A stretch of DNA of 64,000 nucleotides, from contig CM074519.1 in assembly GCA_037379345.1 (NCBI GenBank), forward strand, positions 11,800,699-11,864,698, written 5' to 3'. The stretch comes from Perna viridis (Eukaryota). The notes beneath the pieces were generated by a model, which did not search any database, was not told where the DNA came from, and saw only the letters and a list, made by a program, of their open reading frames with translations. Both the position numbers and the translations under genes were made by a program. The stretch's first letter is position 1. Each line of letters opens with the position of its first letter. Shown one piece after another: positions 28,888 through 64,000 of the stretch.

Positions 28888-28980
28888 CTTTCCGAATCCA
28901 GAGAAGAAATTTTTGACATCTTCTACTGTCGTTGATGCAGACAAACCTCCAACAAATATTTTTTTTGTTCTAGTGACCAT
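28888..28980 (-). CDS. msi: Musashi exon 6 ([31 protein letters not shown]; RRM2 RNP2), 93 nt
   Basis: Acceptor attctttcag|, donor AAG|gtaagt. Diagnostic [14 protein letters not shown]; lies within ORF 28867..29058. Confidence 0.98.
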
Positions 28981-46791: not shown

Positions 46792-46833
46792 CTTTGGCTG
46801 TGCTTTTCTTGGGAATGCTACTTTAGGATCAAC
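46792..46833 (-). CDS. msi: Musashi exon 5 (VDPKVAFPRKAQPK; end of RRM1 and linker), 42 nt
   Basis: Acceptor atatcctcag|, donor AAG|gtaagt. Matches Musashi IDPKVAFPRRAQPK. Confidence 0.97.
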
Positions 46834-50018: not shown

Positions 50019-50103
50019 CACTTTGGAATCTAGTTCATGTGGACATGCTTTGAGCACCTTGTCAACATCATTAGGATCTTGAAAGGTGACGAAACCAAAA
50101 CCC
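50019..50103 (-). CDS. msi: Musashi exon 4 (GFGFVTFQDPNDVDKVLKACPHELDSKV; RRM1 RNP1), 85 nt
   Basis: Acceptor tttgttttcag|, donor |gtatgg. RGFGFVTF RNP1 and HELDSK motif; lies within ORF 49953..50222. Confidence 0.97.
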
Positions 50104-57273: not shown

Positions 57274-60181
57274 CATTTATACACAAGATATCTTTTAATA
57301 TCTTTAAAGGATTTTTTTTAACTGTAAAATTATTCATTTATTTTGTAGAAGCCTTTCTAAGAAGGTCAAAAGCAAGAGTGAAAGAATGGCTAACAACAGC
57401 TGAACCTCAAAATAAGCTGTGCTTATAAATAAAAGGCCCATTCTGGCGGGTGGCACCTAGTACAGCAGGTACGGCTATGGTCATACCAATAATTTTTGGT
57501 AATTTTTTGGTACTGCATACCATAATTGAAATTCTTGTCAAAATCTCTTTAAAAGGGGGTATTTTACTTGGTAGCTAGTTATATCTAGTTCAAAAATAGC
57601 AAGGTAATTTTTCTACTGACCAATCGAGATTTCAGTGCTATGCCTCTGATACTGCTAACAACTGACTTCAGAATAGAGGCAACTATCCGAGGAAACACAC
57701 TATGACATGGGCTTACAGAAATTTAGCCATCTACATCTTAAGGAAAATTTGGCATCGAAAAATGTGTGAGAAGAAACTTGGATGATTAAATAAAAATAAA
57801 TCCAAATATTTGTTTCAATATACTGCCTCTTAAAAATATGTGTGTTTAATCAAATTAAAAATGATACAATCACACATACATATGTTCTTTAGAGATTAAA
57901 AGGCAGTTTCAAGCAGCCTGTGACCCCTAGTGTAAGTATGGACAAGACATGCTGAACTTTAGGAAAAAATGTTTAAAGTTTGAGTTCTGAGCTGGTTATA
58001 CTTTTGAAGAGAATTTCTGATTCCAATTACACTATACATCTATAGACAATTTTTCCTTCCAATTTTTTTTTTTTATTAATTCTAATATTAAAATACTATG
58101 AGATTAAACAAGGGGCTACATACATGAACATATATCAAGCTTGAAAACTTTAGTTTTAAGATAAAGTTGTGACCTCCAAACTGGTCAATTTACTAAACTG
58201 ATAAAATATTTTAAGGTCGTGAATTTATTGCTGTGTTTACTTAGAAGGTATAAACAGTGCTGATAAATGGCCAGTAGGTGATACTAAGGTTTCACAATGA
58301 AATATCCCAAAATCTATAAAACGAAAATTTATAAAATGCTTGAAACGTTATATAAGGAAAAAGATTTTGTTGCTTTTAGATTATCGTTGAAAAGTACTAC
58401 ATGTACATACATAAAAACTCCTCGGAGAATGAATGATAGTTTTTGTTGTAGATTGATAGCAAAAGTTTTATGTTTTTATTTTAACATAGAATGCATATGT
58501 ACATGTAAAACCTATGAACTCAATGAAAGATATTTTGCTTGTAATACAAATGTAAATGGGGAACAAGAATTTGATTGAAGGATAATTTTTCATCAAACAA
58601 GTGAATCAGTGAAGCTAACACACTGATAAGCAGTTATATGTACATTAAAATTCAAAACTTAAACAAAATTATACTGGGCTTTATTGAGGGAAAGTTTTAG
58701 GATTTTAAATGAATAGTTCATATAAATTAACCAGAGGAAAATTATCTGACACGATTGAATTTTACATTATATAAGGATGATCACCCCCCCCAAAAAAAAC
58801 TATAAACAGTATATGTTTCTCAGCATTGAAATCATCATTAAGGATGCAATTAACTCTGCCAGGAAAATGCAATAACAATCATGTGCATCTGACATCTGTT
58901 CAAAACAGGCAACTACAGTTACAAATATATGAATCCTCATTTTCTTTCCATGGCAGAGAATCTACTGATTTTCACAGTCTATTTATTATAAGGCTACTAG
59001 CAATTTAAGAGGCAAAATTGTTTATAATTAAGGCTTTCAGCTGTTTTACATTTCAATCTTTTGTCATGATTTTGATTGAAAAAGCATTTGAATAGGATAA
59101 GGTGAATTTGAATTTAGTAATCTTTCTCACTGTGAGAAAATCTGACCTAAACATGAAATTAAATGTTTCAATATAAAAGAACCTTTCATTAATAGTTTTT
59201 CTGTATTGTGGTTATTGGACGTCATTTACTATCAAATATGAATTATACCAAATTCAGTGACTATACAATTTTCTTTATTCCTACAATTCGCACCTGTTTA
59301 GGATTTCAAACCCTATTTTTTACCCCTAATTAAATATCCTTAAAACCAGGATCAACATGCATTTGACTAAATCTGATAGGAAATTTCTGTGATTCACTTT
59401 CTTATGTTATCATGGTGTTATCTCGAAAATGGCGAGATACTATAGAATGTAAAGAAACCTATGTTATCTATACTAAGAACTTGTTAACAACACAGAAATT
59501 CCATTAGTAAACTGACTTGAATTTATCGCATAGAATAGAAAAGAAAACTCCCACTGTGTACAATCAAATGTGTTTTACTTGTAGATGACATGATGTTTGT
59601 CAACTCGATTTGTTACTTTTCCATTTTGTGTATTGGAATTTTAATGAACTTGTAATCTTGTAAGACAATGTCATTCAAAAATGACACAACATATTCAAAT
59701 TTTGACAATGAATAAATTTCCTACATTGTTGAATAGTGTGGCTACATGCAATATGTATGTAGGGGAATTCAAGTTTGGCTTCGAAATTTATGCCCTATTT
59801 GAAATTTCCACAGATCTTTTCATTTAGAAAGGAATTTTTAGATACTTATCACAACAAATGTCATGGTAGTCCAAACTTACACAATGAACCTATTAAAATT
59901 TTTAAAATCGGTTGACTAATATGTTGTAAAAATATCATTAAATTATTTAATTTCCCTATACATGAATTAGACCATTGTGAAATTTTATTAGTACCTTGTG
60001 GTTTTTAACGTATACTCCCAAGAAATTTACTGGATAGTTTAAAATCAATTGTCAATTGTTATGCTCAGAATCAATGCCCGGAGGACTAAGGAAAAACGTG
60101 TGAATGCTAATAATAGAGAGGAAACGGTTTATTGTATTTAAAATCAGTGACCCGTAGCGGAAAATGTAAACAATGGCTTAC

Positions 60182-60263
60182 CGTGAACGTTTGGTAGTGG
60201 GGTCCTTCATAACCATTGCTTCCTTAATTTCTCCAAATTTACCAAAGTGTGCCTTCAATGTTT
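60182..60263 (-). CDS. msi: Musashi exon 3 ([28 protein letters not shown]), 82 nt
   Basis: Acceptor cattttgcag|, donor |gtaagc. Musashi RRM1 motif [11 protein letters not shown]. Confidence 0.97.
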
Positions 60264-60464
60264 CTGCAAAATGAAATAAAGCACACAACTTTGAAACGGA
60301 CCATACTTCGACAAGCACTCGCTGACATTAAATTTAAAGAACTTCCGACAAAAAACTCCACAGAAAACAATTAACGGTATGATATGCTCTATGACCCAGA
60401 ACAACACGAGATAGCGTAAAATTATTGTTGACATTTTTTCAAAAATAGATTAAGCACAACATAC

Positions 60465-60505
60465 CTGCAGTCGTTTGCCACGATAGTCCACCTATGAACA
60501 TTTTC
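60465..60505 (-). CDS. msi: Musashi exon 2 (KMFIGGLSWQTTA; RRM1 RNP2), 41 nt
   Basis: Acceptor tttctttgcag|, donor |gtatgt. Translation matches the Musashi-family KMFIGGLSWQT motif; phases fit exons 1 and 3. Confidence 0.97.
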
Positions 60506-60653
60506 CTGCAAAGAAAAAATACATTTCATTAAGAAAATCTTACGAGCCGGTGACCTAAATCTCCCAAGATGATTGAAATTTGATCGCGTACGCTCACAAA
60601 CAAAAGATCAATCGAGAAAACAACTTAGAAATTCACTTCTAATTCCAACTAAC

Positions 60654-60724
60654 CCGGGATCATTTGGTATATCATCAATGCCATTTGTAGAAATTGGTGA
60701 ATTTTGAGCGGGATCCATCTTCAT
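60654..60724 (-). CDS. msi: Musashi homolog, coding exon 1 (MKMDPAQNSPISTNGIDDIPNDPG; 71 nt, phase-2 end)
   Basis: ATG at 60724-60722 with an in-frame TAG two codons upstream (second ATG at 60718). Ends DPG as in Musashi 'DPGKMFIGGL'. Donor GG|GTTAGT; splices in frame to exon 2. Confidence 0.9.
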
Positions 60725-60727
60725 TTT

Positions 60728-60758
60728 CTAAATACTACTTCTAACTAAACACTACTAC
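60728..60758 (-). promoter_or_regulatory. Cluster of Musashi-binding elements in the putative 5' UTR
   Basis: Sense RNA GUAGUAGUGUUUAGUUAGAAGUAGUAUUUAG-AAA-AUG: 6 UAG, 4 matching (G/A)U1-3AGU. Confidence 0.6.
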
Positions 60759-60775
60759 AGATATCCAAAGTAATG

Positions 60776-61007
60776 CACGTGGGGATGAAATGAAGATCGC
60801 TACACTACTATTGGTTTGAGGTGGGTGGGCCATCCGCGCGTCTCTCAAAGGCGCCAACTATCAGTGATTGACAGTCCTTTATCAGCTATCGATTGGTTAA
60901 TTGGCTGTTGCCTGGCAACACAAATCAGTTCTAGCTGACGTAATGTTAGCTTTTGACCACAAACCACGCCTTTATATACGAAATACACAATACAAACAAA
61001 CCCGCCC
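60776..61007 (-). promoter_or_regulatory. Musashi proximal promoter
   Basis: Locally CpG-richer. E-box CACGTG 60776-60781; CCAAT boxes (ATTGG on +) at 60810, 60892, 60900; PBX/PREP-MEIS decamer TGATTGACAG 60865-60874; X-box GTTGCCTGGCAAC 60907-60919; CRE-like TGACGTAA 60936-60943; GC boxes 60964-60970 and 61001-61007; TATA-like 60971-60978. TSS not determinable. Confidence 0.75.
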
Positions 61008-64000
61008 AGGTTCATTTATGGCTACGATATTGAATTATTTTTAGTGATTAGAATTTTTATAGCATGCATGAATGGAAACGAAACGTTAAATCTGCATTTC
61101 AATAGCGAATACACATCAGGAAAGATGAATAATTTGATGCGATGAATTTTAATCGATTTTTGTTTCATATCTCGCCGGTAAGGCTTTGTAACAAGATGTT
61201 TTATAGACGAAGACTTTTAATATTAAATTATTACATTTCAATGCACTAGGCAAACACGTCATTGATAGAATTAATCCAGCGATAATTGCATTAACTACTG
61301 TATCTGGCAGACTTAATCACTTTGGCAGATTCTTAGACTGAAATGATCCAGGTTTTGACATTTCTTGGGCCTAGATACATATCGATAATTTTGTATATAA
61401 CAACTTTCATTTTATCATTTATCTGACTAATATTTGGTACGTTAATCTCGTTTGACAATACCTGCCCGAGGTTACAAGATAAGCGAGTCCTAAATCTTAT
61501 AGTATGGCGAGATAAAGATTTTCTCTTATTGACCTGAGATCGTTCTTTCTACTGTCAAAAAAATTACGCAATAATTTTAATTGGGATTTTCGGTAATTAA
61601 AAACTCCAACCGTTAATCTTCAAATCTCGCACCTTGCACGCATTGAACGACCGTTGGCATTTTCCAGTCTTAAATTTGTTTATTGAAAAGTTTAAAGTGT
61701 AAAGTGTACGACAGAAACTGCAAAAAATACCGAAAACCATGCGTGACTTTTACGGGTAATTAGTCTACAGTATTCTAGGAAGGAAAATAAAATTACTCGG
61801 GATTTTTATGTCAGTACTGTGAAATTATGGATGATTAAATTTATACTACAACGGTAACTGATACACTTACAGATCACTGATTTTGCATGCATTGGAGATG
61901 ATTTCAGAACGGGCACCATTTTCTCCAGGGTTCAGGAGCAATAGGGCGACGATCTCAGACACCGTCTCTTAATTTCATATTTCAGCGTTTTCCGAGGTTC
62001 AAATGCTATTTTAACTGAAAGAAAATACTTTAAACCCTCTTATAAACAGAATGTTTATGTAACAGCAACAGGGGTGTTTTGAATACGATTCTTCAAAACG
62101 TACAGAACAAACTAAGCCGGTTCTGCAAAAAAAAAATGCACACAACCATGATATTTTAAATCCAAGTTCACTTTGAAGAAACACTTCACTATAGACTGTG
62201 AGATTTCGCTGTCCATATACTGAGTTTACTTCTGTCACGACAAATCCTGTACGCTAATAAAGCTATTACCAAGTGTAGCTTGATATATTTCTTCTACCCT
62301 CAGTCCTGTAGGACTTTGAATATCGTGGCTATCTACATCTTTTATAGTACAATGTGAAAAGGTAGACGACTCCCGGATATTAAGCTACTATTATATCTAT
62401 TTGATATATGGATATTCTAAAAAAAGAAAAAAAGGATGACAAATATTCTGTCCTATCAATACAATGATCGTTATTTTTTTCTGAAACAGATAATTGAAAT
62501 AACCAATGTGGCTTGCTTTAAAAAAAAAAGTTTCGACCGAAACTCTTTTTCTCGATTATTTTCGACAGATTATCTTTGTGTGTGTGTTTTCTGTTTGTTT
62601 TTAGCGGCGTTTTAATTTTCCGTGCTAAATGTCTGACGAATTCTTCAAGAAAGCATACCTCAAACTGGTTTCGTACCTGCACCACTGAAGGTCCTTCGAG
62701 CCGATGACGATTTTCGCATCTTGTGGGTACAGTTAGCATAAAAAGGATCACACCAGTAGTTATGTATACAAGTATAAAGCCAAGTTACATATAAGTCCAT
62801 ACGTGACATGCTTTCTGCCCCTCTTTGTCGTGACCCGACTGGTTGATGCCAAACAGTTAAAAGCCATCACAAAAACATTTTGGTATTACGGATCAAGTCA
62901 TTTAAGGCCCATACAGACAGATCGCCCGAGGAGATTATCTATCGTGCTTGGAGCGACATCTTTTTTTAGCTTAAAGTGGAAAAGCCTAAATCATGTATCA
63001 ATAGACAGACAGACTGACTGAAATTGGATTTAAATGAAGGGCGATCGGGCAAGTCACTGTATTTGATACCAGCGTGCATCTCCCAGATTCCCCAAACCCA
63101 TGTTTACTGGTTGTTCAATTAACTCGTTTATCATTGTGTTTTGTATTTAATCACTTTATTAATTATATTCTCTACCATTTTGCACCACAGAAAAAGATCA
63201 AAATAATAACGAATAACTCATCCCTATCGAAAACCATTCCAATCAGATACTATAATGGAAAAACACAACATCACTGTACCACAAAAACACAAAGCGCCAA
63301 TTATAAAACAAAATACCGATAATTGTTATATAATGGCATACAACAGGAAACTGGAACACATTTACTGTATTTTAAAGGACATCTTGCCACTTAAATTTGA
63401 TTGTATTGATCATATTACGCAAGATCCCAGCGTGTGTGACGTAACGGTGTGCGTTTTTAAACACTTTGATGACTACTAGTCGATCACTTTTACTTGATCA
63501 TACTGACTTAGCCAATAGTCGATAAAAGCAGATTTATGTGAATTTGGTTCCAAATGGCATATTCCGATTACTTATTTATTTACGGATTGGCAATGAACCA
63601 TTTATCAACACCGGGTCTTCTCTCCTTCACCGCAATAGCGCAGGGTAGAAAATAGGAATGGCAAACTAGTGCATGCTCCTTGTGTTTCCAATATACTATT
63701 TGGACAACACACATACGCATTAAGTAGCCGTCTTTGTAAAAATCATGCAAAATCTGAAAAATGTGACACACCCCAAAAAAGGCTACATATTTTTATTTTT
63801 GTAATTAAGTTGTTTAATGGGTCTATACAATGAAATGTGTAATTATCCATTCAAATCTGCCTGCTCTTAGGAGATAATCAACATTGAAAATCCAGTAGAT
63901 TCTATTGTTGTTGACTGTCATTCACAGAGTTATCTCCCTTTATTTTGAGATCTCCAGTGCATTCTATATAATTTTTATCTCCTATGAGTACGGGTTACAT

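Follow-up and report, generated by a model that had tools for sequence, protein, structure and literature searches.

Known systems and the Musashi leader of Perna viridis

PABP binds an A-rich tract in the 5' untranslated region (UTR) of its own mRNA and represses its own translation, and on the 5' UTR of msl-2 the RRM protein Sex-lethal, bound to repeated short motifs, halts scanning before the main AUG together with an upstream open reading frame (uORF). For Musashi, a binding element in the 3' UTR of the Xenopus Musashi1 mRNA was reportedly described by Arumugam et al. in 2012. The present work deals with an array of UAG triplets lying directly upstream of the Musashi start codon of Perna viridis, on the minus strand of a stretch of 64,000 nucleotides (nt) of contig CM074519.1 (GenBank assembly GCA_037379345.1, positions 11,800,699 to 11,864,698 of the forward strand); this whole stretch is referred to as the window, and positions are counted from its first letter. 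An initial annotation, made from the letters of the window, had proposed that the array is composed of Musashi-binding elements through which the protein represses its own translation from an unusual place, the 5' leader.

The autoregulatory A-rich tract of the PABPC1 5' UTR is mentioned in PMC5308895, and it has been noted that RNA-binding proteins often regulate their own mRNA (PMC6884704). Xenopus Musashi1 regulates its own mRNA via a site in the 3' UTR, constituting a positive loop in oocytes (PMC6884704), and human MSI2 immunoprecipitates its own mRNA (PMC7961039). The Musashi binding elements of the numb and Xenopus Musashi1 3' UTRs have in common with the array a UAG core, GUAG/UAGU flanks, units placed 0-5 nt apart and a presumably unstructured context, and in the Xenopus case the target is likewise the Musashi mRNA itself. 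Unlike these 3' UTR elements, the array is a candidate site, located in the 5' leader 3 nt before the AUG and containing 5-6 units in 30-40 nt. The Xenopus loop is positive and operates via cytoplasmic polyadenylation, whereas a site in the leader would more readily be expected to affect scanning or the recognition of the AUG.

By analogy, the nearest working counterpart would be PABP on its own leader: in both cases the leader contains repeated copies of the motif recognized by the encoded protein, and the (here proposed) negative feedback at initiation is shared. They differ in protein family and motif, and in that the PABP element is experimentally proven whereas the Musashi array is so far a candidate supported by sequence, expression and conservation. 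The comparison with Sex-lethal is looser, as the msl-2 motifs are U-rich, the regulation is not autogenous and the Musashi uORF is not conserved. The sites of hnRNP A1, A2/B1, DAZAP1 and Unkempt also consist of UAG units read by tandem domains; however, the array is devoid of UAGGG, is dominated by G-UAG and UAG-U flanks and adjoins a start codon, whereas those sites are located in alternative exons or coding regions. Autogenous control through arrays of motifs is known in kind, the position being new for Musashi, and a literature search found no description of a UAG array in a Musashi leader. The 5' placement, from -3 to -35 and not in the 3' UTR, is indeed as unusual for Musashi sites as the initial annotation had stated.

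The UAG array and its rarity

On the minus strand, six UAGs are contained within the 30 nt from 60757 to 60728, followed by AAA and then by the AUG at 60724-60722; as read from the sequence, the first letters of the TAGs are found at 60757, 60754, 60747, 60743, 60737 and 60730, leaving gaps of 0, 4, 1, 3 and 4 nt between consecutive units, and all six fall in the last 37 nt 5' of the Musashi AUG. Four of them fit the pattern [GA]T{1,3}AGT (three GTAGT and one GTTTAGT), the form (G/A)U1-3AGU obtained by systematic evolution of ligands by exponential enrichment (SELEX). Further upstream on the same strand a trio of UAGs, ATAGTAGTGTAG, occupies 60811-60800 (TAG at 60810, 60807 and 60802). The initial annotation had described both groups, namely six UAGs in 30 nt ending 3 nt 5' of the AUG with four consensus matches and a second group of three, and its coordinates and counts are correct.

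Considering both strands of the window, the Musashi array is the sole cluster with at least 6 TAG per 30 nt, the runner-up having 5. Twenty random loci of this 723-Mb genome, amounting to 400,000 strand-bases, contained no cluster of 6 TAG in 30 nt, and the only stretch with five UAGs among them was a simple (TAG)5 repeat. Six UAGs are reached by 1.7e-4 of the 40-nt sense-strand windows at the Musashi locus. Genome-wide, the four-UAG core pattern is rarer than its reversed control; over 1.45 Gb of strand it occurs ~430 times, often as a simple (TAG)n repeat, meaning that the chance per given 40-nt window is ~1e-5.

This genome is rich in simple (TAG)n repeats, and in principle the array might be a low-complexity stretch that arose by chance, or the remnant of a TAG microsatellite, in either case devoid of function. 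This explanation is scarcely credible, since Tandem Repeats Finder (score 30) called no repeat at the array, the background counts are low, the empirical P does not exceed 2.4e-3 in any of the seven loci analyzed and the arrangement has been kept in lineages split since the early Palaeozoic while the adjacent spacers change. Microsatellite or chance origin was therefore rejected.

Other UAG clusters are present at these loci. Those with at least 5 UAG per 40 nt are strongly biased to the Musashi sense strand (29 sense vs 4 antisense in seven species, leader array included), and two further clusters of the window lie on the minus strand at 2082-2128 and 1210-1255. A cluster in intron 7 of the gene was among those seen. 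The bias arises partly from the T-/G-rich sense strand; the rest may represent further pre-mRNA Musashi sites.

Identity of the gene

The gene downstream of the array is a Musashi orthologue. Its exons were located via RNP motifs and tblastn, each exon being searched singly; exons 1-7 are contained in the window on the minus strand, and the remainder of the gene lies past position 1. Exons with KMFIGGLS, GFGFVTF and KIFVGGLS were found, evidencing tandem RRMs, while RNP1 of RRM2 was not seen in the window, being either beyond it or split by an intron. Three exons matched RRM_1 in Pfam and no other family was seen. In single-exon PDB searches Musashi-1 and Musashi-2 were the top single-domain matches with hnRNP A/B close behind; as the single-exon PDB and Pfam E-values were unable to split Musashi from hnRNP A/B, exon 6 was searched in a representative library. 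A HMMER search with its 31 residues retrieved Musashi proteins that have an identical N-terminus (MKMDPAQNSPISTNGIDDIPNDPG) as well as the Musashi linker, and a word search with one of the exon-6 relatives retrieved proteins named by NCBI as Musashi homolog 2 or Rbp6 from many molluscs. In tblastn the window exons showed 93-97% identity with a mytilid Musashi transcript. The RNA-contact residues have been listed for RBD1 (the first RNA-binding domain) of mouse Msi1, Trp29 and Phe96 being confined to the Musashi family (PMC3326303), and 11 of the 11 (K21, F23, W29, R61, F63, F65, K88, D91, K93, V94 and F96) are kept in exons 2-5.

The exon-1 donor GUUAGU (60653-60648), although confirmed by RNA sequencing (RNA-seq), is not conserved: it reads GUAUGU in Mytilus, GUGAGG in Crassostrea and GUAAGU in Pinctada, Mya, Haliotis and Patella, so that its interpretation as a Musashi site is weak.

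Conservation in molluscs and beyond

Orthologue loci of 50-104 kb each were obtained via exact-protein look-ups; Mercenaria, Pecten, Pomacea and Patella vulgata, in which the gene spans >100 kb, were left out of the set. The number of UAGs in the 40 nt 5' of the AUG is six in the window and in Mytilus galloprovincialis, five in Crassostrea angulata, Pinctada imbricata, Haliotis rufescens, Patella caerulea and a cephalopod mRNA contig (89% identical to Octopus Musashi), and four in Mya arenaria and in contig L030 from a metatranscriptome of the Joint Genome Institute (JGI). In each of the seven genomic loci the count at the array is the sense-strand maximum or within two of it (empirical P 1.7e-4 to 2.4e-3). 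The comparison of the window with Mytilus (leader 85-89% identical, introns 72-75%) is too close to inform alone.

The alignment of 11 leaders revealed a core, UAG-N-AGUAG (60743-60735), in which the AGUAG half shows little or no variation across the set and the first UAG is at least 90% conserved, with one non-mollusc row (L064) needing a one-base shift for this first UAG. In terms of alignment columns (row position 1 being 60850), G110, T114, A115 and G116 are invariant and T108, A109, A112 and G113 nearly so, while the spacers between UAGs vary in sequence and length. The layout shared by the leaders is approximately G-UAG, 0-4 nt, UAG, 1-4 nt, UAG, N, AG-UAG, 4-7 nt, UAG, 3-6 nt and AUG.

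At the start codon itself, AUGAARAUGGA is kept in all aligned leaders, the non-mollusc clade included, providing two in-frame AUGs one codon apart. The second of these has the stronger context and may affect start-site choice beside the array.

To extend the comparison, contigs of JGI metagenomes were scanned with the Musashi alignment, yielding 80 transcript-like contigs and 63 distinct complete leaders. At least three UAGs in the last 40 nt were counted in 11 of these 63 leaders, whereas shuffles predict 1.5 (maximum 8 in 5000 shuffles); in 3' UTR windows of the same contigs, at least three UAGs occurred in 3.7% of the cases. Six array-bearing marine contigs, with four to six UAGs in the 40 nt 5' of the AUG and N-termini of the MKMD- or MKME-type, form one clade (97 in the Shimodaira-Hasegawa-like approximate likelihood ratio test, SH-aLRT), which in the tree groups with the molluscs as their sister, separately from arthropods, hemichordates and vertebrates, and probably represents another spiralian phylum. 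The UAG enrichment in orthologues that the initial annotation had proposed to look for thus occurs at the same position in molluscs and in their sister clade. Because bivalves, snails, a cephalopod and this sister group have all retained the cluster, it is probably an ancient control element, as judged from the sequence comparisons.

Outside this grouping, a barnacle-like leader contains three UAGs, and Musashi-like contigs with long N-terminal extensions from long-branch taxa (L076, L077, L067, L079, L099, L104 and L106) display two or three UAGs directly before the AUG, one such arrangement being UAG..UAG.AUG. The latter leaders hint that the UAG habit may be wider than the spiralians.

A strand-specific and probably unstructured UAG element

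TAG is the most over-represented trinucleotide in the 11 leaders, with 53 observed vs 11.4 expected (z = 13). Conversely, in these AT-rich leaders TAA occurs once and TGA and ATG not at all, vs ~12 expected each, and CTA is found ~4 times. As the same-letter permutations are missing and CTA is rare, the signal is UAG-specific and strand-specific.

UAG being a stop codon, the array could serve as a barrier that ends the translation of a uORF, or translation from near-cognate starts, in all frames. The six UAGs of the window do span three frames, and a uORF of 30 codons, whose upstream AUG (uAUG) is in strong context, stops at the fourth of them; in Haliotis and Patella, too, the uORF terminates within the array. 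This explanation is nevertheless very unlikely, as five of the 11 leaders have no UAG in one of the frames, and UAA and UGA would do equally and yet are avoided (see the counts above). Besides, the uAUG is present in four of the seven genomic leaders (window, Mytilus, Haliotis and Patella) and missing in Crassostrea, Pinctada and Mya, and the uORFs measure 5 (Mytilus), 29, 30 and 31 codons and encode unrelated peptides. Neither a three-frame stop barrier or uORF terminator, which was rejected on the basis of the non-conserved frames and uORF and the avoidance of UAA and UGA, nor a conserved regulatory uORF is supported, since uAUG and uORF are not kept among orthologues.

The consensus fold of the aligned leaders contained no base pairs, and leader stability was no greater than that of shuffled sequences (fold z = +0.5). 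In the minimum-energy fold of the window's own leader the first two UAGs of the array are paired with an upstream stretch that is not conserved. No Rfam covariance model matched 60500-61100 at E <= 1. A structured RNA or a member of a known RNA family was rejected on these grounds.

Presence of the array in mature mRNA

Two stranded raw RNA-seq runs and two contig sets were placed on 58500-64000. The joints 60263/60465 and 60504/60653 (GT..AG, minus strand) were present in four of four runs, and these two joints, together with a loose end at 60181 leading into the GFGFVTF exon, confirm the splicing of exons 1-4; the polarity of all reads on Musashi was as expected for minus-strand RNA. The spliced contig of run X1 spans 60653-60845 and that of X18 spans 60653-60796, and a thin RNA contig is located at 60814-60965. 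Among the stranded raw reads, depth was registered within 60708-60891 and none in 60892-61075. Since the spliced contigs reach 60845, both groups of UAGs are part of the mature mRNA. In every other transcript contig that bears an array, from the cephalopod and other invertebrates, the array is likewise inside the mature mRNA, at 3-6 nt from the AUG. The initial annotation had suggested verifying that the array is retained in the spliced mRNA, and both the RNA-seq data of this locus and the cephalopod and other invertebrate contigs confirm it. A cluster of splice or trans-splice acceptors was rejected, as spliced contigs and reads cross the array and no joint was reported there.

These observations also bear on the idea that the TAG triplets are DNA sites for a transcription factor, their presence in mRNA being incidental. 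The array adjoins a promoter block, in that ~300 bp 5' of the AUG are conserved from bivalves to gastropods and contain CCAAT, CRE-like (cAMP response element), X-box-like and CACGTG motifs; moreover, transcription may start near the array, and some molecules end inside it. However, a unit of 3 nt falls short of the usual length of a DNA-binding site, the units stay while their spacing shifts by insertions and deletions, the orientation is strictly sense (53 TAG vs ~4 CTA), and the location in mature mRNA so close to the AUG is common to every transcript contig. A role as DNA sites is consequently regarded as unlikely.

The reader of the array and a possible feedback loop

The base 5' of UAG is G or U in 47 of the 53 sites of the 11 leaders (G in 28; the hnRNP D-type unit UUAG in 19), and the base 3' of it is U or A in 36 of 53, UAGG being found at 11. 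The individual orthologue leaders possess 0-4 sites of the SELEX form, 2-6 (G/A)U1-3AG sites and 2-4 GUAG sites, while UAGGG, the core of the high-affinity hnRNP A1 site UAGGG(A/U), has zero occurrences in the 11 leaders, and an hnRNP A1-type UAGGG site was hence rejected. RBD1 of Musashi reads GUAG and RBD2 reads UAG (PMC3326303), and MSI1 and MSI2 prefer a second UAG ~2 nt away, tolerating 1-5 nt (PMC12136788). In sequence terms, the flanks, spacing and apparently unstructured context of the array fit these published Musashi preferences (PMC3326303, PMC12136788), and the flank pattern appears to fit hnRNP A1 less well than Musashi.

We infer that a tandem-RRM protein specific for UAG recognizes the element at the RNA level and that Musashi is the most likely reader, because every RNA-contact residue is conserved in its protein. 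Another possibility is that a functional RNA element is read by a different protein (of the hnRNP A/B- or D-type, DAZAP1 or Unkempt) that controls the translation of Musashi or the splicing or export of exon 1, Musashi being the target only. Conservation and the mRNA evidence fit this explanation equally well; Unkempt and MSI proteins compete for UAG sites (PMC12136788), the stacking of F23 and F65 on A and G is common to hnRNP A1 and hnRNP D (PMC3326303), and the abundance of UUAG would suit an hnRNP D-type reader. Conversely, UAGGG is absent from every leader and UAGG is infrequent, the G that precedes UAG in about half of the sites matches the Musashi-specific contact of Trp29 to the first G of GUAG, and regulation of the own mRNA is common among RNA-binding proteins (PMC6884704). 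On balance, a reader other than Musashi is regarded as possible but less likely.

The interpretation that we tentatively favor over the others is that the array constitutes a functional and presumably single-stranded UAG element read by Musashi, which would confer autogenous translational control on its own mRNA. In such a mechanism, five or six UAGs separated by 0-5 nt would give room for two or three Musashi molecules, and the protein, when abundant, would coat positions -3 to -35 of its own leader. As the last UAG lies 3-6 nt from the AUG, the coated leader would hinder the scanning 43S complex or the recognition of the AUG, the outcome being a negative feedback that keeps Musashi levels steady, as PABP does on the A-rich tract of its own leader. 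That Musashi is the reader and repression the effect is speculative. A wider version, in which a mollusc-wide homeostatic loop, probably shared with another spiralian phylum and >500 million years old, would let Musashi throttle its own translation via a multi-UAG pad at the AUG, is possible and held with more reserve.

Several considerations weigh against this autogenous control. Proteins of the hnRNP A/B-D type, DAZAP1 and Unkempt likewise recognize UAG, and given these several readers the sequence alone cannot name the one that acts here. Musashi sites are mainly described in 3' UTRs, scanning ribosomes usually strip off proteins that sit far from the cap, and Musashi is able to activate as well as to repress, making the sign of the effect ambiguous. 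The array is embedded in the deeply conserved promoter/leader block of ~300 bp, and it may have a role at the DNA level. In the RNA data, the per-base depth of the leader is ~1/5 of that of the coding part of exon 1, which may be due to the usual 5' fall-off or to a second start site within the array; in one run 60745, a position within the array, is the end point of five among 15 molecules, and thus part of the mRNA may start there with only two or three UAGs. Finally, in most arthropod-type Musashi leaders the array is absent and there are no UAGs. Altogether, the interpretation given in the initial annotation is partly supported by sequence, expression and conservation: it survived the two refuting conditions that were checked, absence from mature mRNA and lack of UAG enrichment in orthologues, whereas the binding by Musashi and the repression are predictions.

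Coordinates and other observations at the locus

The features of the locus are compiled in Table 1. Conserved blocks extend over ~300 bp 5' of the Musashi AUG (window 60776-61010, minus strand) from mussel to abalone and limpet, and this promoter block constitutes a further case of unusually deep non-coding conservation in molluscs.

Table 1. Positions of the Musashi exons, leader elements and conserved promoter motifs in the window.
Feature	Position	Strand	Basis or remark
Minimal 5' leader in mature mRNA	60725..60845	-	spliced contigs and stranded reads; true 5' end may extend beyond
UAG array	60728..60757	-	6 UAG/30 nt, 3 nt from AUG; counts and orthologue conservation
Array core UAG-N-AGUAG	60735..60743	-	11-leader alignment
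Upstream UAG trio (AUAGUAGUGUAG)	60800..60811	-	adjoins CCAAU motif; UAGUAG pair kept in 5/5 bivalves
uORF, 30 codons	60741..60833	-	uAUG at 60833, strong context; stop is fourth UAG of the array
Start codon	60722..60724	-	second in-frame AUG at 60718-60716
Exon 1 coding part (MKMDPAQ...NDPG)	60654..60724	-	donor GUUAGU 60653-60648; joint 60504/60653 (cut +1) in four runs; tblastn
Exon 2 (KMFIGGLSWQTTA; RNP2 of RRM1)	60465..60505	-	RNA-seq joints, tblastn
Exon 3 (RRM1 middle)	60182..60263	-	joint 60263/60465; loose end at 60181 continues into exon 4
Exon 4 (RNP1 GFGFVTF of RRM1)	50019..50103	-	loose-end RNA sequence, tblastn
Exon 5 (VDPKVAFPRKAQPK)	46792..46833	-	carries contact residues D, K, V and Musashi-specific Phe
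Exon 6 (linker and start of RRM2)	28888..28980	-	motif, PDB, Pfam, HMMER, tblastn
CACGUG (E-box-like) inside leader	60776..60781	-	invariant or nearly so in 10/11 leaders; 20-45 nt 5' of array
GCCCACCCAC	60830-60821	-	cross-species conservation
GTCAATCA	~60872	-	cross-species conservation
CCAATCG	60897-60889	-	cross-species conservation
Palindrome GTTGCCAGGCAAC	60919-60907	-	cross-species conservation; presumably fits the RFX X-box consensus
CRE-like ACGTCA	~60945-60933	-	cross-species conservation
GGGCG(G/T)GTTTGTTT..ATTGTG block	~61007-60986	-	cross-species conservation

Two regions upstream of the gene were also registered. Window 63652-64000 showed very deep RNA coverage on both strands in all runs, with many variant letters and loose ends, as well as joints of the "opposite strands" type connecting 63799-63801 to 63894-63997; the pattern resembles that of an expressed repeat present in many copies and having inverted arms, perhaps similar to a miniature inverted-repeat transposable element (MITE) or a short interspersed nuclear element (SINE). 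At 61681-61807 a small island of reads of opposite polarity (plus-strand RNA) was observed, and three runs showed a joint from 61807 to 61681 that includes 25 foreign letters; this pattern suggests either a diverged repeat copy or a small antisense transcript upstream of Musashi.

Significance

The dosage of Musashi sets the stem/progenitor state vs differentiation, and its excess drives tumours in mammals. To our knowledge, the control of Musashi levels is poorly known and the only self-regulation described is the positive 3' UTR loop in frog oocytes. An array of the protein's own motif by the AUG, older than the split of bivalves, snails and cephalopods, points to a simple and testable feedback. 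If the proposed control is true, no Musashi element before this one would have been known to act from a 5' leader, and the array would join the few animal examples of an autogenous initiation block that is sequence-defined and deeply conserved. As a natural minimal RNA of ~35 nt it may also serve as a model for the loading of several tandem-RRM proteins on closely placed UAGs, for whether such a complex stops a scanning ribosome, and for the competition of Musashi, hnRNP proteins and Unkempt at one site.
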